64,000 nucleotides of DNA. Origin: Phallusia mammillata (Eukaryota). Position 1 is the stretch's first letter, and every line of letters starts with the position of its first letter. The translations under genes and the position numbers were made by a program. The notes beneath the pieces are model-generated. The model searched no databases, was not told where the DNA came from, and worked only from the letters and a program-made list of their open reading frames with translations. The DNA is taken from the NCBI GenBank assembly GCA_965637545.1, contig OZ281496.1:2790001-2854000 (forward strand), given 5' to 3'. Shown here in pieces: positions 1,531 through 52,707 of this stretch.

Positions 1531-1960
1531 GTGGTGTAAAATACAAGTCAAAGCAGTTCTTCCTGCAGAAGCAGGTCGACTGTTGACAAACAAATACCAA
1601 CGTTAATAAGTAAACTAATAATGTAGTGTGTAGTTTATCGTGTTATTTGTTAAGCATGCAACTTTGCACAACTATAGAAGGTTTCCCAGCGAGATTCGTG
1701 CAGTCAAACATTGCACTTCATACTTATTTTACCAGTTAACACGCCTTTATCGAGTTACCAAACGAGCTTTTTACAGCCAACCATTTGATTCAAGCACTAC
1801 TTCAACCACATAAGTTCGGTTTCCTAACAAGCTTCGTGAATCTGCAAACGCTTAGCACTTAACACGATCGTACCGGGTCTAATTCTGAGTGACTTGGCAC
1901 GACAAAAGAAGCAATAAACAACATCAAACAAGCTTTTGTCATTGCAGATGATTTCTTCAT
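1531..1960 (-). pseudogene. Cys-rich secreted peptide, subfamily 1, copy A (exons 1-2 only)
   Basis: Exon 1 1960-1874 (87 nt) MKKSSAMTKACLMLFIASFVVPSHSELDP, GT donor. Exon 2 1579-1531 (49 nt) STCFCRKNCFDLYFTP, AG/GT. No exon 3 homologue found downstream in the window, and the usual upstream module is replaced. Confidence 0.7.
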
Positions 1961-2049
1961 ACTGATGCGTTTCAATCAGTCAAAGTTTTGGGCCTACACG
2001 GGTTTTTGTTGCTAGACACTGCAAAAAACAATATTAAATATAACGGATG

Positions 2050-2930
2050 AAGGTCACTTTGGTTCCGTAAATTCTCGGTGCTAACTCTGACTTTCGGGGT
2101 TTAAAAATCACTAAAGTCCACGACCTACCGAAACACTACCGAAAGAAAGACCGAAAACTTCCGGTTAGTCACGAACCCATGACGGCTGGAGCATTTTATT
2201 AATCTTGCGATCAGTCGTTAAAAATGGCGATTCGTGCCCAGCGCATTGCTAAGTATTTTTTGCGCGCACCTGCCGAGTTCGGCCGTGCGAATTCAACTGG
2301 GTATCTCTATGGACGTCGAATTATGACGAAATTGGGTAACTCCTTAACAATTCTATTTTCGGTGGAAAGGATTTTCACCGAACGGTAGTGCACCGTTGCT
2401 GTACAGTTGCTAGGGTGTCAACTTCGGATAAAACGAAGTCCAGGTTAAACGGTCAAGTGCGATATCTTATGAACCCATGGTTGAGCACCGCTGCAACTCG
2501 GCATCCGAGCTCGTGGCCCGGCCCCCGTTCTGGATAAAATAAAATTGCCACCAGGGCGCGCCATTTTGTTGGATTTTGCTTGCGGAAAAGGCTCGAAAAG
2601 TCCCTGTCGCTATGGCAACGGCCTGAAACCCTTGATTTCCGCTCCCCCGAAATTCCGGCCGCTAGGTGGCGCATCAGCAAATGGTTTTCCGGTGCCGATT
2701 CGGCCTTAGAAACTTGTTTTTCGCGTTTTTCAATTTTCCGCGAGTGGTCGCACGCGCGCCAGCCCGCCTTTGCGACGCCCCCCGGTAGACGTAGAGGATT
2801 AGAAAAAAAAACATTAGGCGAAACCGAATCGGGGAGGATTCGGGCGATATGTGGGATCAGCCCTGAACCGTCTGTGCAGACCAGCGATTGATCATTCCAA
2901 AAAATACTGACACAGAGTGTGAAGTCAAGT
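2050..2930. other. GC-richer insert of unknown origin between copies A and B
   Basis: Visibly higher GC than the flanks; it interrupts peptide-gene homology. No convincing ORF or terminal repeats identified. Confidence 0.35.
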
Positions 2931-3416
2931 TATTTTTTTAAATGAAACCTGAGCCCGAAAAACGCGGTCCGACTTACAACTTTGGGTTGATCTATGTAAT
3001 TAATTTTGAACGTTTTTACAACTGAAGCAAGGTTAGTATTACTCTGGGCGCCCTGTGTATTGTAGCGTGTCGTGCTGTACGTGGGTTTTGCCTAGAATTG
3101 TTGCAAGCCAAGTGCAATTGTTTTTACATGTTTTATTCGTTTTGCATAAATAGGACTGTTAGTGAAACCAACTTGTGGTCTCTATTTAGCTCTTTGGTTG
3201 TAAACCGTTATTACAGGGTTGGAGCGCTTTCCAAGATGGAGAGGCAGTTTTGTTATTGTACAGAATTATATATAAATGATCGAATGGAGCTTAACATCGC
3301 CGCACCTAAACTAATTTTAAACAAATTCCAAAAGCTGTCAAAACACTTTCGTAACATAACAACAAATGTAGAGGCTTATTCTATTACATCTTAAATGTGT
3401 GTTTTGCTTGTTGCTC

Positions 3417-3994
3417 CTAGTTCATCACAATTCCTTCTTGATCAAGATGATTGCAGCGCCCTTGAGTTTTGCAGACTAGGCAGTTGTCACGGACTGCAAT
3501 AAAAAACTACGTTATTTTCATCAAAATTACACTTTAAAATGTTGTGCTTTGTGGTTATGAAATTTACTTGGTAGGAATAGATAGTCAAAGCAGTCCTTCC
3601 TGCAGAAGCATCTCGGCTGTTGACAAAATAAATATCAACTTTAATTAGTAAACTAATAATGCAATGTGTAATTGATAGTGTCATTTGTTGAATGTACGAC
3701 AGACCTAAAGAAGGTTTCCTAGCGAGCTTCGTGCAGTCAAACATAGCGCTTGTTGCATAATTTACCACTTAACATGCTTTAGGCGGGGGTTTATTAACAA
3801 GCTTCGTGCACTTAACCATAGCCGTTCTTGCATACACTACTTTGACCACATAAGGCGTAAACCCTTCGTACATCTGCAACGGATTAGCACAACAAAATCG
3901 TACCGATCGAGGACAAACCCGAGTGACTTGGCAAGATCAACGAAGCAATAAACAACATCAAACAGGCTTTGGTCAGTGCAGATGACTTCTTCAC
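3417..3994 (-). pseudogene. Cys-rich secreted peptide, subfamily 1, copy B (GTG start, frameshifted exon 1)
   Basis: Exon 1 3994-3904 begins GTG and is 91 nt (others 87). Exon 2 3616-3568 PRCFCRKDCFDYLFLP and exon 3 3493-3417 IRDNCLVCKTQGRCNHLDQEGIVMN* are intact. Confidence 0.75.
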
Positions 3995-6198
3995 ACTGAT
4001 GCGTTTTCTTTGCAAGTTCTTGGTTGATCAATTATCTGTCGGTTTCTAAACGATATGAACATTTTAATATGAGAGGCTTTATCATAAGGGACATCTCTAG
4101 TCAAAACTGCAAACATGCGTAAAACAACAATTGTTGGGCAAAGCTGAAACCTAAGCATTTATGACTTCCACCAGTCGTTAATGATTTCCTGATGGCTGCG
4201 CATTGTCACGTTTAAGGTTTAGCCTGTTTGATAATATTAAATCCACTACTAGCAATGATTTGTAGCGTAAATGGTCAAGAAAAATATGGCCGACAAACAA
4301 TGACTTTAGACTTGTGATCTCTTTAACTTGTCACCTTTGCCAACAAACTTGTAAATCGTTGGCACAGAACCAACACATATTGTGGTAAATACTTGTGTGA
4401 GTAAAGGCGGTAGATAGTTAAGTTCCACAATTTATCCAAATAGTAGCAATTTCAGCTTGGATAATCATAGTTGTAACTAGGTACAAGCTTTTCGGGTCTT
4501 AATTTGAACAAAACTAGCCTGGCATCACACTCGGTTTACATACGTGTCGTAATTTCTCGGACATTCGGGGTTTGAAAATAAAAACCTTGACTAGGGACCA
4601 GGTTGAGTTTGGATGATACTTTCAGGTCCTCTTACAACTGCACATATACATACCAAATCACCAAGCTTAGTTAGGCAAGACGTTTTGGAATTCGTCATTA
4701 TTGACAGAAATAAAGTCAGTGCTACATAGAAATATTAAACCGAGTACTCTTTCGTGTTGATGTTTTGCACGGTTTTAATACACCCGTTTGTTTACGTCTA
4801 GAATTAATTAGAAAGTACAATTAGGTTCCACAACACGAAAGTAGATAATTAAGGAATTGGTTTTATTTATTTTATTATTTTTTCGTTAGAGGGTTGGTGA
4901 CTTCAACTTAGTACAACTTATTGTGTTCCACTGCGTTTAAGTTTGAATAAAACAGACTTGGATAGAAATTATACGCAAAATTTAAAGCAAGCAGTTTTTT
5001 TGCTGGCAAGCGCTAAACAATGTAAAAGTTTACGCTCAAAACCAAATGATTTCCTTGAAACTTACGGGACATTCAGGTTTCAATCAAAGATTCAAAAACT
5101 GCAAACAGGCAAAAAATGAAACCAAAATTGAAACCTAAGCATTTTCGACTTTCAGCGGTTCTCGGAGATCTTATAGTAGTTTAAAGAGTACTGTTTTAAA
5201 AATTATCACTAGGAAAGACTTGTAACATGTACGATTGAAACATGATAAAAATAGATCCTATAAGTTTTCACGTTAACTACCACAATAGCTTTACATGTAT
5301 TCACTATAATTTAATGTCATTGCTTGTAAAAATGCAAATTGTTGGCACAAAGTACGACACTGGTATTTAAAATACGAGTGCCCCTCGCACGGCAGTAAAA
5401 CAGTAGCTAGCTAGGTTTGTATTGTAATCTATATAATCCATAGACGTTAGTCAGATTGACTTCAGTTTGGATTTATGATGTTTGTTTTCATTTTACTATT
5501 TTTATGTTTGATTAATTATTATCGGTTTTTCTAAATAGTCTAGTTTTCAATTGGTCTGCCAGTTTGTATTATATTGTATGAAATTCGATACTGGACAAAA
5601 ACGGTAAAAATCAGTAGAAAACACTGTACAGGACTAGAAAGTTAGTTGTTTCTGTTTTTTATTTTTTAATCCAGTGTAATTATTTCTGATCATACGATTT
5701 TCTGTCGTTTTGTCTTTGTAATTTTTGTGTTGTGTTCTGCATATTTTTGATTTATTTTTGTTTGTCTATACGTCTGCGTTGGAACCTGTGGTACTCAGTA
5801 AATGATTGTTTTTGTTTCTTTCCATATCTATCCTGAGTCTGTTTATATTTGTATTTTACGAGTTGTTTTATGCATATGCGGTTTATCGGCGTACGAAAAC
5901 AAGGCGCCCATTAGTGAAACCAGCTTGTGGTCTTTCTTTGGCTTATGGGTGAGCCGTTATAGCAGGGTTCGGGTCGTTTATGAATTAGGGAGGCAGTTTT
6001 GGTTTAAGAAAGAATAAGGCAACAGTGGTCTTTTGGAATTTAACGTCGCCACTTAAAAGATATTTTAGCCGAATTCCCAAAGCTGCCGAAATAATTCCGT
6101 AACTTAACCACTCTGACATTTAGCATACATTCATTTCTACCAAATGTAAACAGTCACCTGTTTTATTACACCAAAAATACATGTTGTATATGTTGGTC

Positions 6199-6808
6199 CT
6201 ATTTGGTGTTTGTTTCCTCTTCATCTTTAGTCGGGCAACGTCCTTGATGTTTACAGCTTATGCAGTTGCTAAACACTGCAAAAAATCAACAATTTTGAAT
6301 TTAACAGATGATCAAAACCAAAATATTTAAAAAATTAGAAAAATTGATTTGTGGGTAAAAAGTTTGCTTACGGAGTGAAAATCCAAAATCAGCGCAGTTC
6401 TCTGTGCAGAAGCATCTTGTCTGTAAACACAATATAAACACCAACTTAATCACTAAACTAATAATCCAGTGCGTTTTTTGTCGTGTTGTTTGTTAAATGT
6501 ACGACTTTGCACACCTAAATAAAGGGTCCTAACGAGCTTCGTGCAATCATACATATCGCTTGTTACGTATTTTACAACTCAACACGCTTAAAGTGGTTTT
6601 CCTAACAAGCGTCGAGCGGTTAACCATAGACGTTATTACATACACTACTTTGACTAAATAAGGTCGGTTTTCAGACAAGCTTCGTGCATCTGTACAGGGT
6701 TTACACTTAACACAATTGTACCGGGTGTAAAGCTGAGTTCCTTGGCAAGACAAACGAAGCAATAAACAACATCAAACAAGCTTTGGACAATATGGATGAC
6801 TTCTTCAT
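6199..6808 (-). CDS. Cys-rich secreted peptide, subfamily 1, copy C (intact, 70 aa)
   Basis: Exons 6808-6722, 6420-6372, 6275-6199, all GT-AG, phases 0 and 1. Product MKKSSILSKACLMLFIASFVLPRNSALHPTRCFCTENCADFGFSLLFSNCISCKHQGRCPTKDEEETNTK*. Confidence 0.85.
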
Positions 6809-8100
6809 ACTGATGCGTTTTTCTTTGTAGGTTCTTAATTGATCAATTCGCTGTCGGTTTCTAAACGATATGAACATTTTTCACAGAAGAGGCTTTATCA
6901 TAAGGGACATCTCTAGTCAAAACTGCAAACATGCGCAAAACAACAATTGTTAGCAAAACTAAAACCTAGGCATTTTTGACTTCCACCAGTCGTTGCTGAT
7001 CTCCTGATGGCTTCGCATTCTTCTTGCTCATAAACAACTGATTTCCTTGAAACTTACGGGACATTCAGGTTTTAGTCAAATATTTAAAAACTGCAAACAC
7101 GCGAAAAAAATCATATCAAAAATGAAACCCAAGCATTTTTGACTTTCAGCAATCCTTGGTGATCACTTCCTGCTTCAGGTACAGTTTGTTAAAAAGCACT
7201 GCTTTAAAAATTATCACTATCAAATACTTGTAACGTATACGATTGAAACATGGTAAAATAGATCACGCAAGTTTTTCACCTAATAGCGATTTACATGTAT
7301 TCAGTTTAATTTAATGTCATTGCTTGCAAACAAAAACTGCAAACACGCGAAAAACAATAACAATTGGTTTCAAAAATGAAACCTAAGCATTTCTTACTTC
7401 TTCCAGTCGTTAGTGATAGCTTTTCAGCTGCATGTTCTCACATGTACGTTTTAGTCTATTTGATAATAAATTCACTACTATAGCAACGAATTATAACTTT
7501 TACGGTTAAAAAATGGCAAAAAAGGTCTGCAAATTATCATCCTAACCACCTTAATGACTTTTACAATGTGGTAACTTAAATTGTTATCCTTGCTTACAAA
7601 GTTGAAAAATGTTGTCACAGAGTACAGCAGTGAAATTTACCACATAGTAAGTACTCCCTTGTGGATATAGGAATAAGCATTAACGTCAACAGCACGAAGT
7701 TCATTAGGAAATCTGCTTAGGGCTTAAAAAGTCGTGCACGCTAAACTTTACAACCCTTAGCTGTTTAGTGAAAACCAATAATGTTCCACAACCATATTGT
7801 ATGTATAGCTATGTATACTATACAAAGGCCCTATTGTTCTGTAATTTCAAATTGTATAGTAATATTACGGGTTGTACTAAATACCGCATGTTACTGCACC
7901 GTTCTCTTCATTGTAGCACTCTACCATACAGAAACAATTGCATTGCATCCAGCGTAAAAGCTGTCTGCATTGACTTGACAGTAATAACACCAAGTAAGGT
8001 TTGATCGTTAAATGTAATTTCGTCATGTTAATGCGTTTTTATTAATAGTTGTTTAAACCGGATTGCATTTAGTCCGGTACAACTGTCAGTTTGAACATTT

Positions 8101-8460
8101 TCCCGCATGTGCAAGACAAGCCATTTCCCAAGAAGATGCGATAGCATGTCCACTGTAAACAGAATATAAACACCAACTTTAATCAGTAAACTAAAAATCT
8201 AGTATTTTGTCGTGTATTTTGTTAAATGTACGATTTTGCACCCCTAAAACGGGTTTCCTAACGAATTTCGTGCAGTCAACTGCAGCTACAGACACATATT
8301 TTCTAGCCCCTTTTTTCCTGACAAGCTTAATGCAGCCAACTATTGCTACAAGCACAAATGTGTTAGCCAAAAAGCCGGTAAACACTTTAGAATACCAAAT
8401 AAACAAACAAGTAGTATGTTGCGCAAAACCTACGTGGCTTGTAGCGATCCTTGTCAATGT
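8101..8460 (-). pseudogene. Remnant of subfamily 1 intron 1 and start of exon 2
   Basis: Homologous to intron 1 of copy C, including the acceptor gtttacag and a few exon-2-like bases (tggacatgctat). It then joins an inverted piece of the upstream module. No exon 1 or exon 3. Confidence 0.55.
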
Positions 8461-9754
8461 ACAATTACGTACGCTACTTGTGCTGGATTTTTTAACTCAG
8501 CATTCTCATTTTTAAACAATACTGTTTGCTTATTTATGTTACTAATTTAACAAATTTGTCGTTCAACTGATGTAATGCTAATAAATATGCAACCTTGTGG
8601 ACGAAACGCTTGTTCAGTATTTTCTATGTTTACTCTGTTATGTTTCAAGGTCTTAAATGTAGAAAAATATTTGGATGACGAAGCTAAAACCTTTTTTTTA
8701 TCTTGTAAGTTGAATGGGTTGCAGGTCAAGTTTATTTACTGCATTCTAATCATTTTTTGTCTTGTTCTTTGACCTTGCATTCAGTATGTAAATTATAATC
8801 AGTTTCTAAATTTAATGTGTAGCCAAAAATTTAACACAAAATTTTTCAATTTATTTTTATTTTTCTGAAATTATGAGCATCCAAAAGTGTCTTTTGTAGT
8901 CTCTGATGCTATTGCAACTCTTCTTGCAGCTGAAATAAAAAATAGCACGCAATATTCTACAACAAAAGCCAAAGTAACAAATCGTTTTTTGTCAAAATGC
9001 AACGAATTTTTTAAAGTAAAAGTGTGTGATCACAAATAAAATTATTGAGGTTCGATTTTTGACAATTTTCTCCATTAATTTTTCGAGATTGAAATTTTGC
9101 ACGTGGTTTTAATGTTTTATTGCCTGTGTAAATCCGAGTTGTTATTTAGATCGGGTTTAAGTTTGAACAAAAGAGTTAGTAAGGGCCTGAATTCACACTA
9201 GACTTTATTCGTGCCAGAATTTTGCCTTTACGGCTCAATTTGTTGTTTGAGTAAATTCTTTCATGAAAATGTGTACAGCAAATATAACGTGGTAACTCAC
9301 CAAGGCATTTACTCCACAGGCATTTCATCATCGATATTTTCAATCATTGCCTGTTCCAAAGCTGATTTTTCTTTCACTGGCACAAAAACAAACATTTCAA
9401 TTCAAACAAGACTAGAGATTTACTTTTTGTAACAAAAGTTAAAATATTTTCAATTTTGCAAAAAAAATGCATTACTTCTGAACAGTAAAAACGTTTTAAA
9501 GGTTGTTTCAGCGAAACACGTAAACATTTAAGACTTAAACATAACTTAAAAATACGAAACAAAATTACCTTGGTCTAGTTGACCACCCCTGAAAAAAGAA
9601 TACAAATGTCGGCATAGGGTATTTTATTCAGCCACAAACAAAACAGTTTCCTAATTATTTTGTACCAACCGAATTATACTAGCTATATACCAACACACAG
9701 TTGTGAAGATCTGTTTAACTGAACATATCAACTTGTCAACCAATCGTGGTGCAC

Positions 9755-9825
9755 AGAGTTGCAAGTCGGGCCGGACTTTTCGGGCCGGGTTTGGGTTCGG
9801 GCCGGGTTCGGGCCTAAGCTTTCCA
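9755..9825. repeat. (CGGGCCGGGTT)-type GC-rich interspersed repeat end
   Basis: cagagttgcaagtcgggccggacttttcgggccgggtttgggttcgggccgggttcgggcctaag; related pieces near 1458-1495, 2945-2985 and 56585-56645. Confidence 0.55.
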
Positions 9826-10371: not shown

Positions 10372-10777
10372 CTAATGACACCCCAAAGTCAGCGCAGTTT
10401 TCGATGCAGAAGCATGGCGTCTGTTAGCACCAACTTTTATTAGTAAACTAATAATCCAAAGTGTATTTTGTTGTGTACTTCGTTAAATGTACGACCTTGC
10501 AAATCTAAAAATGGTTACCAATCAGGCTTTATGCAGTCAACCATAAATACAGGCACAAAATAATTATCTCAACAGCGAGTTTTTGTCTACCAAGCTTGCA
10601 CAATTAACTATAGCTATAGACACAAATAACAAGACTAATAAGCTTTGCGCATTCATTCATAGATACAAGCGTAAAACACTTCTTTGACCCATAAGGCCGC
10701 TCTGAATGACCTGACAAGACAAAAGCAATAATAAACAGCCACTAACATGCTTTGGTCATTGCAGATAATTTCTTCAA
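10372..10777 (-). pseudogene. Cys-rich secreted peptide, subfamily 1, copy D
   Basis: Start mutated to TTG (10777-10775), in-frame TAG after KAC, exon 1 donor lost. Exon 2 from 10420 reads TPCFCIENCADFGVSL with a damaged donor. No exon 3. Confidence 0.75.
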
Positions 10778-11619: not shown

Positions 11620-11778
11620 CCCAGTATGAATGTATTTATTTTGCAGCATACAAGGCAGGCAACGGTGCTTTTAAATCGACTTTTGGCGGGTTCACCACTG
11701 GCTCAGTTGGTCCATGAAAGACTCCTGGCGTGGGTTCGAATCCCACCCACGTGTCTTGTCATATGGGAAAGCCTGGCG
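11620..11778 (+). mobile_element. tRNA-derived element, right half
   Basis: ggctcagttgg...gggttcgaatcccacc followed by a tail ending gcctggcgtac. Confidence 0.55.
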
Positions 11779-12260: not shown

Positions 12261-12347
12261 CTGTGCTGTAGCTGAATGACTTGACAAGACAAAGACAACA
12301 ATAAACAACATCAAACATGCTTTGGACATTACTGATGATTTCTTCAT
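12261..12347 (-). pseudogene. Cys-rich secreted peptide, subfamily 1, copy E (exon 1 only)
   Basis: 87-nt exon MKKSSVMSKACLMLFIVVFVLSSHSATAQ with GT donor and upstream module. Intron 1 homology ends near 12110; it has no exon 2 or 3 of its own. Confidence 0.7.
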
Positions 12348-13284: not shown

Positions 13285-13751
13285 CTATTTGGTGTTTGTT
13301 TGCTCTTGATCTTTGGAACCGCAGAGCCCTCGGGCTTTACAGGTCAGGCAGTTTTGGGCCACTAGAAAAACATTTTTGTTAGAAAAACTAATGATCCAAT
13401 GTTTTTTTAAATGTACGACTTTACACACCTAAAGCATATTTCCTAACAAACTTCATGTTGACAACCATGACTACGGGCACGAATTTACCAGCCAAAAAGC
13501 AGGTTTCCTAACGAGCTTTGTGGAGTCAAACACGGTGCTTGTTATATGCACAACCTTGTAAGCTCCTTACAAGATTCGTACGGTCCGGCATATACGCTGC
13601 TATAAGCACTACTTGCCTGCAAAAGAGTAATGTATCTGCAAAGTAGCAGTTATCACAATTGTACCTGCGCTGTAGCTGAATGACTTGACAAGACAAAGAC
13701 AACAATTAACAACATCAAACATGCTTTGTACATTACTGATGATTTCTTCAT
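13285..13751 (-). pseudogene. Cys-rich secreted peptide, subfamily 1, copy F (exon 2 deleted)
   Basis: Exon 1 13751-13665 MKKSSVMYKACLMLLIVVFVLSSHSATAQ and exon 3 13361-13285 (x)AQNCLTCKARGLCGSKDQEQTNTK* are intact. Intron 1 joins the end of intron 2 directly, so phase 0 to phase 1 splicing gives ...AQWPKTA*. Confidence 0.75.
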
Positions 13752-14847: not shown

Positions 14848-15487
14848 ATGAGAAATCATCAGTAATGTCCAAAACATGTTTGATGTTGTTTATTGTTGCC
14901 TTTGTCTTGCCATTCAGCTACAGCACAGGTTAAATTGTGCTAACTGCTAATACTTTGCAGATACATAAATTTTTCTGTCTTTTGCGGTCAAAGTAGTGCT
15001 TAACAACGTATATGCTTGACTGTACGAAGCTTGTAAGGAAATTAGCCTTAAGCTTACAAGTTTGTGCAAGTAACAAACGCAACGGTTGACAACACAAAGC
15101 TCGTTAGGAAACCTGTTTTTTGACTTGTAAATTCGTGCCCGTGGTCATGGTTGACTGCATGAGTTTGTTAGGGAACCCGCTTTAGGCGTGCACATCGTAC
15201 ATTTGACAAAACACTGGATTATTAGTTCACTAATTAAAGTTGATGTTTGTATTGTGTTTACAGTACTGGCCATGCTACTGCGCCAAGAATTGCGCTGAAT
15301 TTGGATTCACAATAAGTAAGCCAATTTCTTACCCACAAAACACTATTTTACGTTTTTAAAGTTGTTGGTTTTGATCATCCGTTAAATTCAAAATTGTTCA
15401 TTTTTTTGCAGTGTTTAGCAACTGCCTAAGCTGTAAAGCTCAGTACGTTGTGGGACTAAAGATGAAAAACAAACAATCACCAAATAG
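14848..15487 (+). pseudogene. Cys-rich secreted peptide, subfamily 1, copy G (frameshifts)
   Basis: ATG AGA AAT CAT CAG TAA (1-nt loss), a 5-nt loss later in exon 1, exon 2 15264-15315 YWPCYCAKNCAEFGFTI, and a 1-nt loss in exon 3 (starts 15412) that removes Cys6 from the frame. Confidence 0.75.
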
Positions 15488-15863: not shown

Positions 15864-15869
15864 CTGTAA

Positions 15870-17610
15870 GTAATTTCTTAGTGACTCTATATACTACGCT
15901 GTATGTTTGAAATGAATGACGACGCAGGATTAAAGATCTTGAGAAAGTCGTTTACGGAAGTAATAAACGTGATTCTACTGAAAAAGCAGTCTGCTGTATG
16001 ATTTCTATACTTGAGGCTGTTAACACATAGATGGCATCAGGTTGTATGTATTGAAATATTGAAAAAAAGTTTCAAATGTTTGCGAAACAATTTAAAACGC
16101 AACAAGCTAAAGGACCATTAAATAAAATTAAATCAAATTCATAATGCATTAAAAGTGTTTTTGTTTGTTTTGTTCAAACAACAAAACAATACGCCCCTAG
16201 GATTTCAGGTTGTACACAAAAGATAAGTTTCCGTTTATTGTTTTGATTTACAGCAAATCACAATAGTATTTCAATAGAATTAGGAATTCATTTTCTTGTG
16301 GATCGATTTGGTCGCCCCCAGAGTTTGTAGACAGGGCCAGACCAGGTGTAGCAGAATCCACGCCTTCTGCAGAATATGCACAACCATTTTCCTGTACAAT
16401 ACAATAATGTGCAAGATAGTCGGAAAAAAGACTGACACAAAAATCGATCATCTGTTCAAAATATGAAAAAAGGGAAATAAGTAAAATCACGAAAAACTGA
16501 AGAAATTTTTGTCCATCAGACAAAAAATCAAACCAACATAAGACTAAGAAAACAAGTGCAGTTACACACATATTAACTTACTACAAAAAGAGAAACATAG
16601 AATACAAAAACAACACAAACAAAAAAGGGGCAGAAAGCACACTGACAGGCCAACGCCATAGCAACAGAAATAAAACATGCAAATTTAAGAAAAATGTATG
16701 AGAACACAAAACCTGACAAGCAATACGGTTCTCTTTACCAAATATTGATAAGTTGGTGGAGCAATTACGGCGACAATACCTTTTGCAATACCAAGGTCTT
16801 CTTGCCTAAAAAACACATTTTCAGTGCTGTATACTACTGTATACAATCGCATTAATAACTTATTAAAAAAACTGTACAACTACATTTTTAACATAAAGAC
16901 AAAAACAACAACTTACCATTGTAACACTTACACACAGAAATAACAGAAACAGGACAACCAGTTTCATTGCTTCTTTCCTATTACGTCTTTGTACTTACTA
17001 TAGTGTATAGATCTTGCTGGATCTTTATAATATATACAAACATCTTAATAGCATCGTATACGGAAGTCTTGAACGTGAACCTACTCATTTCATTCACTAA
17101 AAATCGTGCACGATAAAACATGTGACAAAATCAAGTGTGGGCTACGATTTCTATACGTGTCGCTTTTTTCGATTTCTATGGAATGATTTGTGCATGTACA
17201 TTACTTTCGCAATTCAGGTTATTAAAAGTCTAGTACTTGGTGTATGAAATGTCGGATGGAATAACTCAAAAATATTAAATTGTTGAAAACGTTCAAAGCT
17301 AATGGAGTAATTGGAACACTTACCAACAGATTTTAATTTCAGTTTTCAAATGGTAAAAGTCATTAAGTTAAGATGAAAAATTGTCAGGCCTGTTTACAAT
17401 GTTTTAACCGTAATAGTTACAATTCGTTGCTAGTAGTGAATTTACTATCAAATAGACTAAACCTTACATGTGGAAAAATGTTGCTATAAAGCTATCACTG
17501 ACGACTGGAGGAAGTTAGAAATGCTTAGGTTTCATTTTTGATATCAATTGTTGTTGTATTTCGCGTGTTTGCAGTTTTTCCCTCACATAAGAAATGTTCT
17601 TATCGTAAGG
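15870..17610 (+). repeat. Segmental duplication block, direct copy of about 46520-48320
   Basis: Near-identical sequence throughout, covering a subfamily 2 gene and a subfamily 1 upstream module. Homology breaks at about 17608. Confidence 0.85.
16288..16967 (-). CDS. Cationic Cys-rich secreted peptide, subfamily 2, copy K (73 aa; putative antimicrobial)
   Basis: Exons 16967-16917, 16805-16739, 16391-16288, GT-AG, phases 0 and 1. Product MKLVVLFLLFLCVSVTMARRPWYCKRYCRRNCSTNLSIFGKWLCIFCRRRGFCYTWSGPVYKLWGRPNRSTRK*. After the signal: 11 R + 4 K, no D/E, 4 W. TATA-like tattataaaag about 60 nt upstream. Confidence 0.88.
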
Positions 17611-21300: not shown

Positions 21301-24300
21301 AGGAGGAGTCAAAAAATGCTTCACAAACATAACACATCTTACAATTATGTTAAGCAAACGTTATTTAATGTACGATTGCGCTGTCTAGAAGTACAACACA
21401 CTTTGGTGTAAAAAATACCTACGTACCCACGCGCCAATTTCGCATTTATTACTTGTACTATTTTCCCCGTTCGAAATGCAGTAAACGTCAGAGTTTATGG
21501 AACACACCACATACGTATAAATGGCAGATTTCGTTAAATTTGCTTTTTGATGAGTTTTTCTACTCCACAAAAAGCATGATACATTTTCATTCATCAGCTT
21601 TTTCAAACCATATAGGCTATTATTTGACATTTGAAGTTACTTACATTAAAATGTCAAGAGGGCAAATGCGCCCTCCTTGTCGACACGTCCCGACGCAAAA
21701 AAACAAAACAGGAAAATTCAACGCAAAGTGCAATTTTGAGTTTCTTGCCATACTCAGTTTTGCAATGTGTTTCGTTGCAGCGTTAAGTTTTCACTATGCT
21801 AATGCTGGTGTGTTTTCGTTTATCCATGATTTTCAAACAACACTTTACCATTTGCCACTTTAGCAGTTACAACAAAAACTCGATAGAAAACGACCACAAT
21901 GGATATGCAGACAACAATTCTAGAGACAACAACTGTTTCAACAGGTAATTCTAAAAGCAAATCATTATCACTAACATATTTAATGATTTGTTTCTTCAAA
22001 TACAATTTAAATAAGTAACTGACAAACAAAACAGTTCTAAATAATACATATTAAACGAATAACGTCTAAAAAACTATTTAAAACAATCGCATAAGATACA
22101 CAACTAACAGTTCTACATACTTCCAGCAAGAATATACAAACCGATATCTGAATCTAAAGCAAATCGTCTATCTACAATTACCTAACGTTTTATCACCGAA
22201 TAATTGCTTTATAACGTCGCTTGCCACTTACTTTTTGTTGTGTGTCATCAAGTTACGTCCCTCATGGGGCATTCATTTTTTTATTTAATTGACGCTAACA
22301 ATATAAACCTTGAATACGTTGCAATGTTTTACATTCAGATGTTGCCTTGTGTCTTTTTGTTGAAAATTCGTATACTTAATACCGGAAGTGGTAAAACTCA
22401 AAACATTGTTTTCCATTTTGCTTTCTAACCAACATTCAAACGTTCATTTTTTGAGATGTACCTGAGTTGAACGATCAAGCAGCTATCTTGAACCCTGCAA
22501 GTGCAGAAGACTTGGAATCGATTGAAAGTTTACTGCTGAACAGAGCAAGAAAAATAAAACCTGGAGATAAAATCGAAGAAAATCATGACAACTCCCAATT
22601 ATGCATAGAACTAGTCAACCAAAATAAAAGTGAATACAATTCAAACCTACAACTTGGATCAACTCACATCGACTTCACCTTACAAACATACGAGACAAGA
22701 CGTCTCGTGGTTGCAGTGTCTGTCTTCAAGATAAACACAACAGTAACCGCACAGACTGAAACCGCCGAATCCGGTTCTCTCGCCACAACGCAGTACATAG
22801 CTACCTTGAACACAACCTACATCGCTATAGTTGGTTGGAACGCGGATACGTTCCTGAACTCACGTCGCAAACGATCATCTACCGATCAAGTAACCGATCA
22901 ACTTCCTGGAAATGTAACTTTCATTGGACCCCCAACGCCTCCAAAGATTTTCTGCACGGAAATCATAGCCCAAAAGAAACACGAGCCAAACCTGATGATC
23001 AACAAACTGGAACCAATCTGTCTCTTCTTCGATAGAGTTAAAAAGAAGTACTCAAATCGTGGTTGCGAAACAATTACTGATGACGTAACAGGCAACGTCA
23101 CTTGCAAGTGCAACCATCTCACTCTTTTCACCGTTCTACTTGCGGTCCAATCCACCAAAATACCAAACAGCGTCAAGGTAAACATTCAGCCGAATAGTTT
23201 AACTAACAGACAATAACAAGCCATAAATATTTGTTTTTAGATTACATCTTACACCACTGAATCAGCATCCATCATGTTTCTGGTCGCCACCATAATAATC
23301 CTCTACAAGTCGAAACACAGCGGAGATCGGGTTCCCGTTCAAATCAGCTTGTCTTTGGCTCTGCTGCTTTTCCACGTCATCAACATATCACATGATCTTG
23401 CCGTCTTAAATGAGGTTACTTGTGTGATGGTGACAGCTGTCAATCAGTATCTGTTGCTGTCGTTAGGTGATTAGAAAACTAAGTCATTTTAGGCATTAAA
23501 AATTTGTCAATGGCGCTACGCGTAAATATCGACTGAACAAAACTCGACAAAGCAGCTAATTTGAGATAACCCTGTGGTATTCAACGCAATGTTTGTTTCA
23601 GGCATGTGGTTACTGGTGGAAGGAATTCGACTCTTCATGGCGACTTCGTTTCCAGTTAAGTTCCGAACTCAGGAATCATCGAAACGTCTAAAAATCTTTT
23701 TGGTGATGGGTTGGATCGTTCCCGCTTTTATAGTGGGAATATCTATGGCTGCGGGATTATCCCTTGGTATCTACATGAAGAACCAACCAATGTATGAGCA
23801 ATGTAACGAGTTTATTCCGATTCTCAAGTACGACAGATGCTGGTTGACACCTGGTACTCCGATCTTTTACACAACGGTGGTCGCTCCTCTTGCTCTCGTC
23901 CTTCTCATCAACTTCGGGATTGTCCTGAAAACAACACATGTGATGTTGAATTCGAAAAAGATGCGGAACAGAGGAGAAGATCCAGGCACAGGAGATGCGT
24001 TGAGAGCAGCAAAGTCTTTTTTCCTACTGTTTCTGATGCTCGGTGGAACTTGGGCTTTGGCTTTCTTTACAGGTGAGTTTGTCCACACACATATACATTT
24101 TAGGAGTTAGATTAATTACTTTAGCTGGTGATTTGAATTTAATAAACCTATATCGTATTTTTCAGGAATCGGGGACGAGATTTCGAACGAGGTGTTCATG
24201 TACATGCACAGCTTGGTGAACGGTTTGCAGGGAGTCGTCGTCTTTCTGCTGTACTGCGTCATGGATGACGACACCAGACAGGAAATCCTGTTGCGCATGT

Positions 24301-45584: not shown

Positions 45585-45773
45585 ATCACTAACGACTGGA
45601 GGCAGTCAGAAATGCATTGGTTTCGTTTTTTCACGGGAATTGTTGATGTTTTTCGCGTGTGTGCAGATATGAATAAAGATATCATTTTCGCTAAAGCCCC
45701 CATATGGGAAATGTTCATATCGTTTAGAAGCCGACAGAGAGTTGATCAACCAAGAATCTGCAAAGAAAATAGT
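45585..45773 (+). promoter_or_regulatory. Conserved upstream module of subfamily 1 genes (representative copy)
   Basis: Core gactggaggaagtcagaaatgcttaggtttcatttttgatatcaattgttgttg...cgcgtgtttgcagtttt...atgggaaatgttcatatcgtttagaagccgacag precedes exon 1 of B, C, D, E, F, G, H, I and J. Orphan copies occur near 5100, 7090, 7340 and 17510. Regulatory role is inferred only. Confidence 0.5.
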
Positions 45774-46331
45774 ATGAAGAAATCATCAGTAATGTCCAAA
45801 GCATGCTTGATGTTGTTTATTGTTGCCTTTGTCTTGCCAAGTTATTCAGCTACAGCACAGGTATAGTTGTGTTAACTGCTAATACTTTGGAGATACATAA
45901 CTTTTGCTGGGACACCAGTCTTTTGTGGTCTTAGTGCTAGTAACCCTGTGCTTGACTGTACGATGTATGTAATGAAACCCGCTTCAAGCTTTCAATGTCG
46001 TGCATGTAACAAAACACACGACAAAACTGGATACGGGACTATTGATACACTGGATTGGACACTGGATTATTAATTTCTTGATTAAAGTTGGTGTTTATAA
46101 TGTGTTTACAGACAAACTGCTATTGCGCAGAGAATTGCGCTGACTTTGGATTGACACCAAGTAAGCAAATTTCTTAACCACGAAACACTATTTTACTTTT
46201 TAAAATTTTGGGTTTTGATCATCCATTAAATTCAAAATTGTTCATTTTTTGCAGTGTTTAGCAACTGTCTAATGTGTAAAGCTCAAGGGCGTTGCGGTCC
46301 TCAAGATGAAAAGCAAACAAACACAAAATAA
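45774..46331 (+). CDS. Cys-rich secreted peptide, subfamily 1, copy H (intact, 70 aa)
   Basis: Exons 45774-45860, 46112-46160, 46255-46331. Product MKKSSVMSKACLMLFIVAFVLPSYSATAQTNCYCAENCADFGLTPMFSNCLMCKAQGRCGPQDEKQTNTK*; AATAAA a few nt after the stop. Confidence 0.88.
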
Positions 46332-46519
46332 AACCAATAAATAAAATGTGTTTTGGGTGTAATAAAACACAGATGACTGTTTACAGTTTGTAGAAATAAA
46401 AGTATGCTAAATGTCAGGGTGGATGAGTTACAGAATTATTGCAGCAGATTTGGGAATTCTGCTAAAAGATCTTTCAAGTGGCGACAAAACAATAGGCTTC
46501 ATTCGTGCTGTAAGTAATA

Positions 46520-48320
46520 TCTTAGTGACTGTATATACTCCGCTGTATGTATGAAATGAATGACAACGCAGGGGCAAAGATCTTGAGAAAGTCGTTTACG
46601 GAAGTGTTAAACGTGATTATACTAATTTTGTCCATAAAAGACAAAAAAAACTTGTTGAAAAACAATTTGCTGTATGATTTCTATACTTGAGGCTGTTAAC
46701 GCATAGATGGCACCAGGTTATATGTAATGAAATATTGAAAAAAGTTTGAAATGTTTGCGAAACAATTGAAAACGCATTAAGCTAAATTAAATGAAATTAA
46801 ATAAAATTCATAATGCAATAAAAGTGTTTTTTTTTGCTCGTCTGTTTAGTTAAAACAACACAACAGTGCACCCCTAGCATTTCAGGTTGTACACAAAAGA
46901 TAAGTTTCCGTTTATTGTTTTGGTTTACAGCTAATCACAATAGTATTTCAATGTAATTAGGAATTCATTTTCCTTTCAATCGATTTGGTCGTCCCCAGGG
47001 TTTGTAGACAGGGCCAGACCAGGTGTAGCAGAATCCACGCCTTCTGCAGAATATGCACAACCATTTTCCTGTACAATACAATAATGTGCAAGATAGTCGG
47101 AAAAAAGACTGACACAAAATCGATCATCTGTTCAAAATATGAAAAAAGAGAAATAAGTAAAATCACGAAAAACTGAAGAAATTTTTGCCCATCAGACAAA
47201 AAATCAAACCAACATAAGACTAAGAAAACAAGTGCAGTTACACACATATTAACTTACTACAAAAAGAGAAACATAGAATACAAAAACAACACAAACAAAA
47301 AAGGGGCAGAAAGTACACTGATAGGACAACGCCATAGCAACAGAAATAAAACATGCAAATTTAAGTAAAATGTATGGGAACACAAAACCTGACAAGCAAT
47401 ACGGTTCTATTTACCAAATATTGACAAGTTGGTGGAGCAATTACGGCGACAATACCTTTTGCAATACCAAGGTCTTCTTGCCTAAAAATCACATTTTCAA
47501 TGCTGTATACTACTGTATACAATCGCATTAATAACTTATTAAAAAAAAACTGTACAACTACATTTTTAACATAAAGACAAAAACAACAACTTACCATTGT
47601 AACACTTACACACAGAAATAACAGAAACAGGACAACCAGTTTCATTGCTTCTTTCCTATTACGTCTTTGTACTTACTATAGTGTGTAGATCTTGCAGGAT
47701 CTTTATAATATATACAAACATCTTAATAGCATCGTATACGGAAGTCTTAAACGTGAACCTACTCATTTCATTCACTAAAAATCGTGCACGATAAAACATG
47801 TGACAATCAAGTGTGAGCTATGATTTCTATACATGTCGCTTTTTTCGATTTCTATAGAATGATTTGTGCATGTACATTACTTTCGCAATTCAGGTTATTA
47901 AAAGTCTAGTACTTGGTGTATGAAATGTCGGATGGAATAACTCAAAAAATGTTAAATTGTTCAAAACGTTCAAAGCTGCTGGAGTAATTGGAACACTTAC
48001 CAACAGTTTTCAACTTTGTAGGCAAGGATAGCAATTTCAGTTATCAAATGGTAAAAGTCATTAAGTTAAAATGAAAATTTGTCAGGCATGTTTACAATGT
48101 TTTACGAGTTACAATTCGTTGCTAGTAGTGAATTCACTATCAAATAGACTAAACCTTACATGTGGAAACATGTTGCTATGAAGCAATCACTGACGACTGG
48201 AGGAAGGCAGAAATGCTTAGGTTTCGTTTTTGATATCAATTGTTGTTGTATTTCGCGTGTTTGGAATTTTTTCTATCAAGATATCCCTTATGCTAGAGCC
48301 CTCACATAAGAAATGTTCTT
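46520..48320 (+). repeat. Segmental duplication block, direct copy of about 15870-17610
   Basis: Near-identical sequence; here the module continues into exon 1 of copy I. Confidence 0.85.
46965..47645 (-). CDS. Cationic Cys-rich secreted peptide, subfamily 2, copy L (73 aa)
   Basis: Exons 47645-47595, 47481-47415, 47068-46965. Product MKLVVLFLLFLCVSVTMARRPWYCKRYCRRNCSTNLSIFGKWLCIFCRRRGFCYTWSGPVYKPWGRPNRLKGK*. Confidence 0.88.
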
Positions 48321-48376
48321 GTCGTATAAAGGCCAACAGCGAATTTGATTAACAAGGAATTTGCAAAGAAAACATT

Positions 48377-48451
48377 ATGCAGAAATCCAAAATATGTTTG
48401 ATGTTGTTTATTGTTGCCTTTGTCTTGACAAGTCAGTCAGCTACAGCAAAA
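48377..48451 (+). pseudogene. Cys-rich secreted peptide, subfamily 1, copy I (exon 1 only)
   Basis: 75-nt exon MQKSKICLMLFIVAFVLTSQSATAK (12-nt in-frame loss) with a phase-0 GT donor; intron 1 is truncated after about 40 nt. Confidence 0.65.
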
Positions 48452-49410
48452 GTAATATTGTGTTAACTGCTAATACTTTGCAGATGCGTGGACAAAAAAA
48501 GGTTAAGAACCGCTGCTTTAAAGCTTCGTGAAAAAATAGCTTGTTTTGCCCTTACAGGAACTGTTCGAACCATGTAAAAGCTGGCAGTGCACTGACCATT
48601 ATACCTAGACTTAAATGCAATCTGGCTTAAACAACAAGTAATGAAAACGCATTAACATGACGAAATCACCATCAACGGTCGAAACCTACTGAATGTTCTC
48701 ATATCTAGTCAAACAGCTTTTGCACTGATAAGAATGTATTTTTTTTCTGTAGGGCATTTATTACCAACCGTAATATTACCACACACATTGGGATTACAGA
48801 ACTAAATAGTCCTTTTTTACAGTATTCATAGCTATACAATATGGGTGTGGAACACGGTTGGTTTTTACTAACAACTAAGGATTGTAAAGTTTTGCGTGCA
48901 CGACTTTGCAAGCCGAAAACGGATTTCCTAGCGAATTTCGTGCTGCAGACTGCTTACATTCCGTACACGACTATATCCACACGCGAGTAGTGACCATAAT
49001 ATGTTGTAAACTGCACTGCGTTGTACTCTGTGTCAACATTTTTCAACTTTGTAAGCAAGGATAGCAATTTAAGTTACACATGGTAAAAGTCATTAGTTAA
49101 GGTGAAAATTTCTCGGGCATATTTGCAATGTTTTTCCGCAAAGTTACAATTCGTTGCTATGCAGTGAAATTATGTATCAAATAGACTAAACCTCACATGT
49201 GGAAACATGTTGCTATGAAGCTATCACTAACGACTGGAGGAAGTCAGAAATGCTTTGGTTTCATTTTTGATATCAATTGTTGTTGTTTTTCGCGTTTTTG
49301 CAGTTTTGTTTAAAGACATCCGTTTTGCGAAAGCCCCCATATGGGAAATGTTCATATCGTTTAGAAGCCGACAGAGAGTTGATTAACCAATAATCTGCAA
49401 AGAAAATAGT

Positions 49411-50214
49411 ATGAAGAAATCATCTGCAATGACCAAAGCTTGTTTGATGTTGTTTATTGCTGCTTTTGTCTTGTCAAGTCATTCAGCTACAGCACAGGTA
49501 AAGTTGTGTGAACTGCTAACACTTTGGAGATACATACACCAGTCTTTTGTGGTCTTAGTGCTAGTAACCCTATGCTTGACTGTACAAAGCATGTAAGGAA
49601 ACCCGCTTTAAGCTTTCAATGTCGTGCATGTAATAAGCGCTATGGTTGACTGCACGAAGTATGTATAAGGAAAACCGCATTAAGCTTTTAAGTCGTGTAT
49701 GTAACAAGCGCTATATGGTTGACTGCACGAAGCTTATTAGGAAACCCGCTTGCAAAGTCATGCATGTAACAAGCGCTATGGTTGACAGCACAAAGCTCGT
49801 TAGGAAACCTGCTTTTTGGCTGGTAAATTCCTACGCGTAGTCATGGTTAACTGCATGACGTTTGTTAGGAAATCTGCTTTAGGTGTGCAAAGTCGTACAT
49901 TTAACGAAACACACGACAAAACTGGACACGGGAGTATTGATACACTGGATTGGACACTGGATTATTAATGTTTTGATTAAATTTGGTGTTTATATTCTGT
50001 TTACAGACAAACTGCTATTGCGCTGACTTTGGATTGACACCAAGTAAGCAAATTTCTTAACCACGAAACACTATTTTACTTTTTAAAATTTTGGGTTTTG
50101 ATCATCCGTTAAATTCAAAATTGTTCATTTTTTGCAGTGTTTAGCAACTGTCTAATGTGTAAAGCTCAAGGGCGTTGCGGTCCTCAAGATGAAAAGCAAA
50201 CAAACACAAAATAA
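49411..50214 (+). CDS. Cys-rich secreted peptide, subfamily 1, copy J (66 aa, five Cys in the mature region)
   Basis: Exons 49411-49497, 50007-50043, 50138-50214. Product MKKSSAMTKACLMLFIAAFVLSSHSATAQTNCYCADFGLTPMFSNCLMCKAQGRCGPQDEKQTNTK*; a 12-nt in-frame deletion removes AENC. Confidence 0.8.
49575..49885 (+). repeat. Degenerate minisatellite (about 60-70-bp unit, about 5 copies) in intron 1 of copy J
   Basis: Repeated tggttgactgcacgaagc..gttaggaaacccgc core; copy number differs among paralogues (about 1 in H). Confidence 0.7.
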
Positions 50215-50569
50215 AACCAATAAATAAAATGTGTTTTGGGTGTAATAAAACACAGATGACTGTTTACAGTTTGTAGAAATAAAAGTATGCTAAATGTCAG
50301 GGTGGATGAGTTACAGAATTATTGCAGCAGATTTGGGAATTCTGCTAAAAGATCTTTCAAGTGGCGACAAAACAATAGGCTTCATTCGTGCTGTAAGTAA
50401 TATCTTAGTGACTCTATATACTACGCTGCATGCATAAATGAATGACAACGCAGGGGTAAAGATCTTGAGAAAGTCGTTTACGAAAGTAATAAACGTTATT
50501 CTACTATTTTTTTCATAAAAAACAAAAAAACTTGTTGAAAAACGATAGATTTACTAAGACCATAACTTA

Positions 50570-50845
50570 CGGTAGACCCAGATCAAGCTATTTTTGATAA
50601 GTGGCGCAAAAAAGCTGAATTATTATTTTGTGGCAAAAGAGGCGGTCGGGTTGGGAAGTCAGTTTTTGAAAATTTGTCAGCAGTAACTAAGTTTTATTGC
50701 CAGTTTCATTGAATTTTAAATGCTAATACCTTACCCCGACCCTAATTGCCCTAACCGTGAGCATTTTAGTAGATATAACGTTTTGAATGGGTTAAAAGTG
50801 CTCTTTGCGCCACCTATTAAAAATGAGCAAAATGTGGGTCCACCG
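50570..50845. mobile_element. MITE, same family as 63545-63815
   Basis: Inverted ends tttttgataagtggcgcaaa / tttgcgccacctattaaaaa. Confidence 0.65.
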
Positions 50846-51089
50846 TGATGTATGGTGTTAGTAGATTTTCTTCGAAAAAACAGTCTGTAGCAATTTTATG
50901 CTTAAGGCTCTTAACATATCGATGACATCAGGTTATATGTATTAAAATATTAAAAATATTTTCAAATGTTTGTGAAATAATTTAAAGCGCAGCAAGCTAA
51001 ATGACCATTGGGCAAAATTTAAACAAATTAATAATGTTTTAAAAGCGTTTTTGTCCTTTTAAACACACCTAACTAAACGTGATATTAAT

Positions 51090-51316
51090 GCCAGCCCCAT
51101 TAATGGCGTAAAACCGAGTCAAGCCGGTCTTCCAAGCATTCCTATATGGCGAGGCACAGACTAGAAAAAATCTACTCGAACATACGACAGGAGACTTTCC
51201 GGGACTCGCGCTCTACCAACTGAGCTACACCGGCTCAGTGGAGAATCACAAGCACCGTTGCCTGCTTTTCATGCTGCACATGTCAGCTTCGTAGTAGGGG
51301 ATCGCTAGTTCGACCA
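51090..51316 (-). mobile_element. tRNA-derived element, partial
   Basis: Minus strand reads gccggtgtagctcagttggtagagcgcgagtcccggaaagtctcctgtcgtatgttcgag followed by the family tail; the spacer matches 11300-11365. Confidence 0.65.
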
Positions 51317-51925
51317 TTTTTCATTATCAAAGGACTGTTCTCAGAAATGAGAATGTAATTTAAAAATGTTACAACAATCCGTTCTCCAGTGATTTGCATG
51401 GCAGTGCAACTAAGTATAAAAAAGGTTTCTAGTTGGTTCTTTCTTTAGCACATATTCTTCTGTGATAGCTGTTGAGGATTTAAAACGAAACGTTCTTGTG
51501 GCAAAAACTCTATTAAAGAAAAAAAAAAAAAAACACCAACAGCAATAAAAAAAACTTGAAATATGCAAAACAACAATAAAGAAATCTCTCTTTTTGAACA
51601 ATGGTGTTGTAACAGCATGGTTTATTTTCTATCGTTTGGGATGGGGTTGAAATTAATTAAATTTTAATTAATTAAAGAGCCTAAATGCTACATATAACTT
51701 AGTGCTATCGAAATTATGGTAATCCCATGCGTAAAAATCATGTTTCAAGTCATGTTTTCGATACGTTTAGCGTTTTTTTTTTTTTTTTTTGTTGTGATAA
51801 ATTAGTACATTCACGTTTATTGTTTCGGCGAATGACTCTAAAAGCTGTTTACGATCAAGACATTATTCATTGCAAACGTACTGTTGAAAGGGACGCTTGT
51901 ACATTACTTCAGGAATATAGAAATA

Positions 51926-52707
51926 ATGAAGCCTATTGTTTTACTTCTGTTACTTTTGTGTGTGAGTATGACAATGGTAAGTTGTTGTTTTTTTGTTGTA
52001 GCCAAATCACCAATTATGATTGTACTTTAAAATAAAAAATAACACTTTTTGCAGGCAAATAGACCATGGTATTGCAAACGCTATTGTCGACGCTATTGCT
52101 CCAGCAACACTTACTCATTTGGTAAATATAACTGTTTTTACTATCCGTTTGTTTTTGTGTTTGTCCTTGTATTTTATCTTTCGATTGTCAACCTGCAAAA
52201 TGGTGTATTTTGAAGATTTTTTGTTTGTTTCTGAAACATCAATATATCCTGTTTTGTGGGCTGTTTATTTTATTAAAAGTTTTGTGATAATTGTTTTAAT
52301 TATATTTTTGTTAATTAAGATTGTTTGTTTTTGCTTATCTGCAATTTGTCTGTTTGTCATTACTATTGTCTTTCTAACTGTCCATTTACATGCCATTAAT
52401 AATAATAATGTTTTAAAAGCGATTGTTTGCTTGTGCTTCCTTTCGAATTTTTGCGTTGTCATTAAATTGTTATTTCGACCATACATGTGTGTATATTCAC
52501 CAGTCTTATTGTTTTGTTTGTTGTTTGTTTTTCGCACAATTTTGCGTGTCATTTTTTCTATTCATATACCAGCTTATACCATATTATTTTTGTTGTACAG
52601 GTAAAATACTGTGCACATTTTGTAAGAGGCACAGATTCTGCTACACATATTCCGGTTCTGTCTTCACGGCGAGAAGAAGACGCATCAAGCCCACGAAAAG
52701 AGGATAA
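51926..52707 (+). CDS. Cationic Cys-rich secreted peptide, subfamily 2, copy M (74 aa)
   Basis: Exons 51926-51976, 52055-52121, 52601-52707. Product MKPIVLLLLLLCVSMTMANRPWYCKRYCRRYCSSNTYSFGKILCTFCKRHRFCYTYSGSVFTARRRRIKPTKRG*; 11 R + 5 K, no D/E, terminal Gly. Confidence 0.88.

Follow-up and report, generated by a model that had tools for sequence, protein, structure and literature searches.

A 64,000-nucleotide (nt) window of the Phallusia mammillata genome (contig OZ281496.1 of assembly GCA_965637545.1, positions 2,790,001 to 2,854,000 of the forward strand; coordinates below are those of the window) carries, between positions 1531 and 52707, a cluster of 13 loci of very small three-exon genes for predicted secreted peptides with six cysteines. 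The loci fall into two subfamilies, S1 (n = 10, copies A–J) and S2 (n = 3, copies K, L and M), which share a common plan: a signal exon and a phase 0 intron, an exon with Cys1–3 and a phase 1 intron, and an exon with Cys4–6. The explanation we favour, with somewhat better than even confidence, is that they belong to a lineage-specific family of secreted disulfide peptides maintained by gene birth and death, and that S2 copies probably encode cationic defence peptides. The family is apparently undescribed.

A six-frame scan for the cysteine pattern, combined with tblastn using exon peptides, returned exactly 13 loci, and coordinate-based splicing of these gave GT-AG introns and exons of 37–107 nt. 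Computed gaps between successive cysteines were 1, 3, 11, 2 and 5 residues in S1 and 3, 3, 11, 2 and 5 residues in S2, corresponding to the framework C-x1/3-C-x3-C-x11-C-x2-C-x5-C, with all six cysteines invariant across every intact copy. These results bear out two proposals of a first-pass annotation of this DNA: that the loci form a family built on one plan, and that the subfamilies share their spacing from Cys2 to Cys6 and differ in the first interval alone. That annotation had also counted 13 genes or fragments; all of the loci are present, but only five are intact (C and H in S1; K, L and M in S2), the other eight, including J, being damaged and seven of them (A, B, D, E, F, G and I) being pseudogenes or fragments. 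The window is AT-rich (GC 34–40%) and free of N. Within it, same-strand pairs of a Cys1–3 exon pattern followed by a Cys4–6 exon pattern were observed 7 times; 100 second-order Markov simulations produced 0.28 such pairs on average and never more than 2, which makes the excess over chance 25-fold. The idea that the loci are non-functional, as chance open reading frame fragments or dead repeats, is the least probable of the explanations weighed here. It would accommodate the eight damaged loci and the absence of the genes from the protein collections searched, but it is at odds with the excess of the pattern over chance, with the invariant cysteines of the intact copies and with the purifying selection between K and M described below, and for S1 it is contradicted by a spliced, polyadenylation-consistent transcript.

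This transcript was found when RNA contigs of three probable RNA runs, each comprising 20–34 million letters of contigs, were placed on positions 45700–51699 of the window. One run (X4, bearing the same species label) contained a 346-nt contig that lies on the window in three pieces, 49304–49493, 46108–46160 and 50138–50240, whose lengths (190 + 53 + 103) match a 107-nt leader with exon 1, exon 2, and exon 3 with a further 26 nt, respectively. The second junction of the contig (46160|50138) is exactly the predicted junction of exons 2 and 3. The first, predicted at 49497|46112, was placed at 49493|46108, a shift of four letters that arises because exon 1 and intron 1 both finish in ACAG, which fits on either side. 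At its 3' end the contig stops 26 nt beyond the stop codon, about 15 nt after an AATAAA signal. The gene plan of S1 is confirmed by RNA. Of the gene models put forward in the first-pass annotation, the S1 junctions were therefore found exactly as predicted, whereas no S2 transcript was seen; only L was covered, copies K and M lie outside the RNA stretch and the runs are small, so that the blank for S2 is no proof of silence.

The contig also bears on the state of copy J (+ strand, 49411–50214; exons 49411–49497, 50007–50043 and 50138–50214; span of the RNA contig 49304–50240). J is intact except for exon 2, in which a 12-nt in-frame deletion between TGCGC direct repeats has removed Cys3. The first piece of the contig differs from J at 1 of 190 positions, and the exon 2 piece maps to the region of copy H (46108–46160) and is undeleted, unlike that of J. 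In this contig, which derives from another sample, a J-like exon 1 joined to an undeleted exon 2 implies either that the deletion in J is allelic or that a close paralogue beyond the window gave rise to the transcript; the deletion is probably a segregating slippage allele. The 5' end of the contig directly follows a polypyrimidine-CAG acceptor at 49304. Such an acceptor is kept in copies B–H and J at sites about 107 nt upstream of the S1 ATG, preceded by about 70 nt of conserved sequence; copy I has GGAA at this site, and the upstream sequence of copy A is different. In a tunicate, an acceptor at the 5' end of the contig is suggestive of trans-splicing to a spliced leader, or else of a non-coding exon further upstream.

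The spliced products support the prediction of secretion and set the two subfamilies apart. Intact precursors comprise 70–74 residues. In S1 the signal exon encodes MKKSS..(S/T)KACLMLFI..FV followed by small residues, giving a basic start and a hydrophobic core, and in S2 it encodes 17 residues consisting of MK and a core rich in Leu, Val and Phe; the mean Kyte–Doolittle hydropathy of the exon 1 core is 2.9–3.8 over 10 residues. Exons 2 and 3 of S1 encode 41 residues with an acidic and polar tail and a net charge of -1 to +1 (-1 over the 41 residues of copy C). The corresponding S2 product has 56–57 residues, no Asp or Glu, 11 Trp, Tyr or Phe, and a net charge of +15 in K (56 residues), +15 in L and +16 in M (57 residues). 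Three features by which cationic disulfide-stabilised antimicrobial peptides are recognised, a signal peptide, an even number of cysteines and high positive charge, all occur in S2; charge is the one on which S1 fails. The subfamilies had earlier been called charge-opposed, a label that holds for the strong positive charge of S2 but overstates the contrast, S1 being neutral and not anionic, and which we reject as worded. The C-termini of L (Gly-Lys) and of M (an Arg-rich tail with a final Gly) are candidate amidation signals, absent from K and from all S1 copies, and by the known rule they would fit C-terminal amidation. Exon 3 of K and L differs at 6 of 104 positions, mostly in the C-terminal tail, where RSTRK in K is replaced by RLKGK in L, making the possible amidation signal.

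Selection was assessed from nonsynonymous (dN) and synonymous (dS) divergence by Nei–Gojobori counts, with significance by Fisher test. Between K and M, the first 45 codons that follow the signal exon gave a dN of 0.24 and a dS of 1.15 (p = 1.4e-4), and the signal exon a dN of 0.155 and a dS of 1.40 (p = 8e-7 when the two are combined); at the protein level, S2 is clearly subject to purifying selection. Between C and H, exons 2–3 gave a dN of 0.22 and a dS of 0.46 (p = 0.09), with p = 0.03 for the whole gene, and the exons encoding the mature peptide (79–81% identical) show no higher conservation than intron 2 and the 3' flank (86%). Coding constraint is weaker in S1 than in S2. Positive selection was rejected, dN/dS being below 1. 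The description of the family as rapidly evolving consequently applies to its birth-and-death turnover, with 8 of 13 loci damaged, and not to positive selection (dN/dS of 0.2 for S2 and about 0.5 for S1).

Self-comparison of the window shows that the cluster has grown through segmental duplication. The unit containing K (15979–17579) is 93% identical to that containing L (46656–48271) over 1.6 kb and 98% identical in introns, which points to a recent duplication of the S2 unit; the 3' halves of G and H are 81% identical, and H and J are 94–100% identical from exon 2 onwards. Turnover of this kind could also be expected of reproductive or self-recognition factors, that is, gamete or allorecognition peptides tied to polymorphic receptors, as could the presence or absence of 12 nt in J exon 2 between the assembly and the RNA contig, the poor conservation of S1 mature-peptide exons relative to their flanks, and the receptor genes that adjoin the peptide genes (see below). 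We nevertheless regard such a role as quite improbable, with dN/dS not above 1 and K and L too nearly identical for strong diversification.

Several features connect the two subfamilies. S1 and S2 have four consecutive cysteine intervals and both intron phases in common; in both, intron 2 follows Cys3 at the identical distance of 7 codons plus 1 nt; and they are interleaved in a single cluster in which each S2 gene adjoins an S1 gene (G–K, H–L and J–M). Kinship is probable because of these shared intervals, phases and intron 2 position within one cluster. S1–S2 alignments scored 39–49, versus 23–25 for full shuffles (p ≤ 0.0085); a MAFFT alignment of H, K and M put the cysteines out of register. 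We conclude with moderate confidence that S1 and S2 are old paralogues.

Among characterised peptides, the closest analogues are the turgencins of the ascidian Synoicum turgens. Turgencin A has the spacing C-x3-C-x4-C-x8-C-x2-C-x3-C in 36 residues with an isoelectric point (pI) of 9.2, and turgencins adopt a helix-loop-helix fold with nested disulfides (C1–C6, C2–C5 and C3–C4) and an amidated C-terminus; the paper reports peptide sequences only and no gene (PMC7024374). Turgencins A and B are likewise ascidian and have six cysteines, and their positive charge is matched by S2 only. The C-x3-C and C-x2-C steps are shared with the peptides of the window, amounting to two of five intervals for S2, whereas three of five intervals differ from S2 and four of five from S1. 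Their fold resembles a low-confidence two-helix prediction for K and H, and their amidation has a possible counterpart in the C-terminal signals of L and M, which K and S1 do not carry. Conversely, the window peptides lack the CXMAC and KKXGG motifs of turgencins, and the S2 product of exons 2–3, at 56–57 residues and +15 to +16, is larger than the 36-residue turgencin A with its pI of 9.2. In Smith–Waterman comparisons with turgencin A, K scored 34 against a mean of 26 for shuffles with fixed cysteines (p = 0.09), and M, H and C gave p = 0.38–0.98. The earlier proposal that turgencins are the nearest analogue, with a different spacing, thus agrees with two of five intervals in common and no significant alignment.

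Other families are further removed. St-CRP-1 and St-CRP-2, also from Synoicum turgens, have 18–19 residues in a CC-C-C-CC framework paired C1–C6, C2–C4 and C3–C5 (PMC13208793). They resemble the window peptides in being ascidian and in having six cysteines, and S1 in their neutral charge, and are weakly antibacterial; their framework and length are unlike those found here. Plant alpha-hairpinins, kappa-hefutoxin-type toxins and viscotoxin-like peptides offer a geometric parallel, the predicted S2 cysteines at i, i+4 and i+8 facing the C-x2-C step in a manner that would suit a helix ladder. Such cystine-stabilised helical hairpins have four cysteines (C-x3-C...C-x3-C) or other frameworks, and no sequence or fold match to them was found with PDB, Foldseek or VIA-align. 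Defensins and knottin inhibitors are likewise small secreted six-cysteine peptides from clustered multigene families. The cysteine frameworks of defensins (cysteine-stabilised alpha-beta, beta and big) are spaced differently from the window peptides, and defensins are beta-rich, in contrast to the helical prediction for the latter. No Pfam defensin family was matched at an expectation value (E) ≤ 10, as the first reading of the spacing had led one to expect. None of the tunicate antimicrobial peptides covered by a 2023 review (styelins, clavanins, clavaspirin, halocidin, dicynthaurin, plicatamide and didemnins) has the framework described here (PMC10608444).

The two-helix prediction comes from AlphaFold2 run on single sequences of K and H. 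The models, which are of low confidence, are helical and not beta-rich, and each has two cysteine-bearing helices (residues 5–17 and 21–32 in K; 9–12 and 16–27 in H). In S2, Cys1–3 occupy positions i, i+4 and i+8 of a single helix face, and Cys4–6 positions j, j+3 and j+9; Cys1–3 could thereby pair with Cys4–6 of an antiparallel helix as a ladder with connectivity of the turgencin type. A Foldseek search of PDB with the S2 model returned no match, and a wide VIA-align search with the same model gave only generic helical hairpins with a Z of about 3. Helices joined by disulfides recall the vanabins, the metal-binding proteins of ascidians, which are rich in Cys and in Lys or Arg and which carry C-x3-C-x3-C and C-x2-C spacings on disulfide-tied basic helices. 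A metal-binding role is very improbable given that no vanabin Pfam family was matched at E ≤ 10, that a PDB sequence search gave no vanabin match, and that vanabins place 18 cysteines in about 90–120 residues, as opposed to six in 41–57 residues.

Sequence searches returned no described family. A Pfam scan at E ≤ 10 matched K only to the carboxypeptidase A inhibitor family PF02977, with a score of 9.6 bits (E = 1.1) where the gathering cut-off is 25, and did not match H. A PDB sequence search gave nothing significant, the best E being 0.2 and the proteins unrelated; the match of K to entry 2hlg, a tomato fruit-specific protein, was non-significant (E = 0.36). A word-based protein search with copy H gave no candidate, an exhaustive phmmer search with K against 1.84 billion protein representatives gave none at E ≤ 0.001, and look-ups of the exact K, H and M products yielded no protein record. 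Scans of JGI metagenomes with K and H found no relative, an ESM Atlas search with exon 3 of M gave no usable match, and the peptide motif strings were printed in none of the 8.4 million papers searched. In line with the earlier suggestion that the family is possibly undescribed, no such family was found in Pfam, PDB sequences, protein libraries, metagenomes and literature, a set that covered no tunicate genomes.

The matches of K to PF02977 and 2hlg, non-significant as they are, raise the question of whether the peptides serve as toxins for deterrence or as enzyme inhibitors (channel blockers, or knottin-type protease or carboxypeptidase inhibitors) directed against predators, foulers or parasites, and small six-cysteine frameworks are indeed typical of toxins. 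These scores lie far under their thresholds, AlphaFold2 gives helices and not a knot, and the first cysteine interval of S1, at one residue, is short for a knottin. We consider a toxin or inhibitor role improbable.

For the favoured explanation, a lineage-specific secreted peptide family with S2 as probable defence peptides, the following mechanism can be proposed. The three-exon genes would duplicate, as tandem and inverted copies, and then decay. Exon 1 would provide a cleavable signal peptide, and exons 2–3 a product of 41–57 residues whose six cysteines most likely form three disulfides. To judge from its charge and composition, S2 would most likely be a membrane-active cationic host-defence peptide, possibly with a helix-loop-helix fold held by a disulfide ladder. 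S1, which is transcribed and about neutral, might be a defence peptide with a different specificity, or might work as the partner of S2. The analysis establishes the loci, the splice plan of S1, the coding constraint and the absence of detectable relatives, whereas secretion, disulfides, fold and defence function are inferred properties of the peptides.

A number of points weigh against this explanation. No contig from the three small RNA runs lay on S2 copy L within the stretch placed, and the S1 transcript was found in one run only, as a single contig of depth 7. Similarity between S1 and S2 beyond the cysteines is marginal (p = 0.02–0.2 with cysteine-fixed shuffles). The AlphaFold2 models have a predicted local distance difference test (pLDDT) score of 58–60, and a cystine-knot fold is possible, given the weak carboxypeptidase A inhibitor match (E = 1.1). 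Blank searches are also weak evidence, as the protein libraries returned neither the peptides of the window nor the X4 transcript and tunicate genomes were not covered; these libraries are evidently short of small tunicate products, because the X4 transcript itself has no entry.

The setting of the cluster raises a further alternative. Between its two halves, at 17600–45000, lie three tandem adhesion-type G protein-coupled receptor (GPCR) genes with a GPCR proteolysis site (GPS) motif and a secretin-family seven-transmembrane (7TM) domain; the copies are 8.7–9.7 kb apart and 88–95% identical, with example exon open reading frames at 22467–23216 and 23574–24110. The peptides might accordingly be signalling ligands, similar to hormones, cytokines or pheromones, and perhaps act on these three receptors. 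Beyond the presence of GPS/secretin-type 7TM genes inside the cluster, at 17.6–45 kb, such a role would be in line with dN/dS below 1 and with the neutrality of S1, unlike classical cationic defence peptides. Physical linkage by itself, however, is weak evidence; the heavy load of pseudogenes and the turnover of copies would be unusual among hormone genes, receptor ligands do not typically carry a charge like the +15 of S2, and S1 has no dibasic processing sites flanking the core peptide. We judge this unlikely, though slightly less so than a role as toxins or inhibitors.

About as doubtful as the toxin or inhibitor role is an extension of the favoured explanation to a two-component system. 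S1 and S2 would then act together, be it in synergy, in the roles of carrier and effector, or as joint ligands of the three adjacent adhesion-type GPCRs, and S2 would be the first tunicate genomic locus of a disulfide-laddered helical-hairpin class of which turgencins would be distant members. A new kind of biology would be at hand only if the S1–S2 pairing or the receptor link were true. Most tunicate antimicrobial peptides came from purification, whereas here a whole locus is available for a new six-cysteine framework, with intact, polymorphic and decaying copies and exact junctions. Annotation pipelines miss such junctions because the exons are only 37–107 nt long, a caution that the annotation of genomes like this one falls short for small secreted-peptide genes. 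S2 supplies candidates for work on activity and structure, their charge of +15 to +16 being unusually high, and the cluster is a case of birth and death in a chordate relative without adaptive immunity.

The individual S1 loci differ in their state of preservation and fall into two sequence types. Type 1 (A and B) has CFCRK.CFD and type 2 (C, D, G, H and J) has C[FY]C..NCA[DE]FG, with ..NC missing from J owing to its deletion. Copy F has lost exon 2 and is placed with C and H by its exon 3. Six of the S1 loci lie on the minus strand in the first part of the cluster. Copy A (1531–1960) is partial, with a signal exon at 1874–1960 and a Cys1–3 exon at 1531–1579; a downstream exon 3 was not found. 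Copy B (3417–3994; exons 3904–3994, 3568–3616 and 3417–3493) is a pseudogene with a GTG start and a frame-breaking exon 1 of 91 nt, exons 2–3 still being open with six cysteines. Copy C (6199–6808; exons 6722–6808, 6372–6420 and 6199–6275) is intact and encodes a 70-residue precursor. Copy D (10372–10777) is a pseudogene in which exon 1 (10700–10777) starts with TTG and contains an in-frame stop, exon 2 (10372–10420) has lost its GT donor, and exon 3 is missing. Copy E (12261–12347) consists of a signal exon alone, with ATG and GT donor intact; downstream of it, near 11720–11760, there is a tRNA-like T-arm fragment that was called by neither ARAGORN nor Rfam. Copy F (13285–13751; signal exon 13665–13751, exon 3 13285–13361) is a pseudogene in which exon 2 is deleted and the join of exons 1 and 3 runs into a stop.

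On the plus strand, copy G (14848–15487; exons 14848–14928, 15264–15315 and 15412–15487) is a pseudogene with deletions of 1 nt and 5 nt in exon 1 and a frameshift in exon 3 ahead of Cys6. Copy H (45774–46331; exons 45774–45860, 46112–46160 and 46255–46331), also on the plus strand, is intact, with AATAAA just past the stop, and copy I (48377–48451, plus strand) is a diverged signal exon alone. All three S2 copies are intact: K (16288–16967, minus strand; exons 16917–16967, 16739–16805 and 16288–16391), which encodes a 73-residue precursor; L (46965–47645, minus strand; exons 47595–47645, 47415–47481 and 46965–47068), which is 93–98% identical to K; and M (51926–52707, plus strand; exons 51926–51976, 52055–52121 and 52601–52707), a divergent paralogue.

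Short interspersed repeats occur at 49596–49815, 50697–50780 and 51176–51317, partly in S1 intron 1. Their summed depth reaches 1e5–5e5 in the DNA run, and each of the three probable RNA runs contains them too, so that they have the appearance of a very high-copy element resembling a miniature inverted-repeat transposable element (MITE) or a short interspersed nuclear element (SINE). Beyond the cluster, two transfer RNA (tRNA) genes lie on the plus strand at 53217–53290 and 53937–54009, both above the Rfam gathering score, the first being identified as tRNA-Ser (GGA) by ARAGORN.

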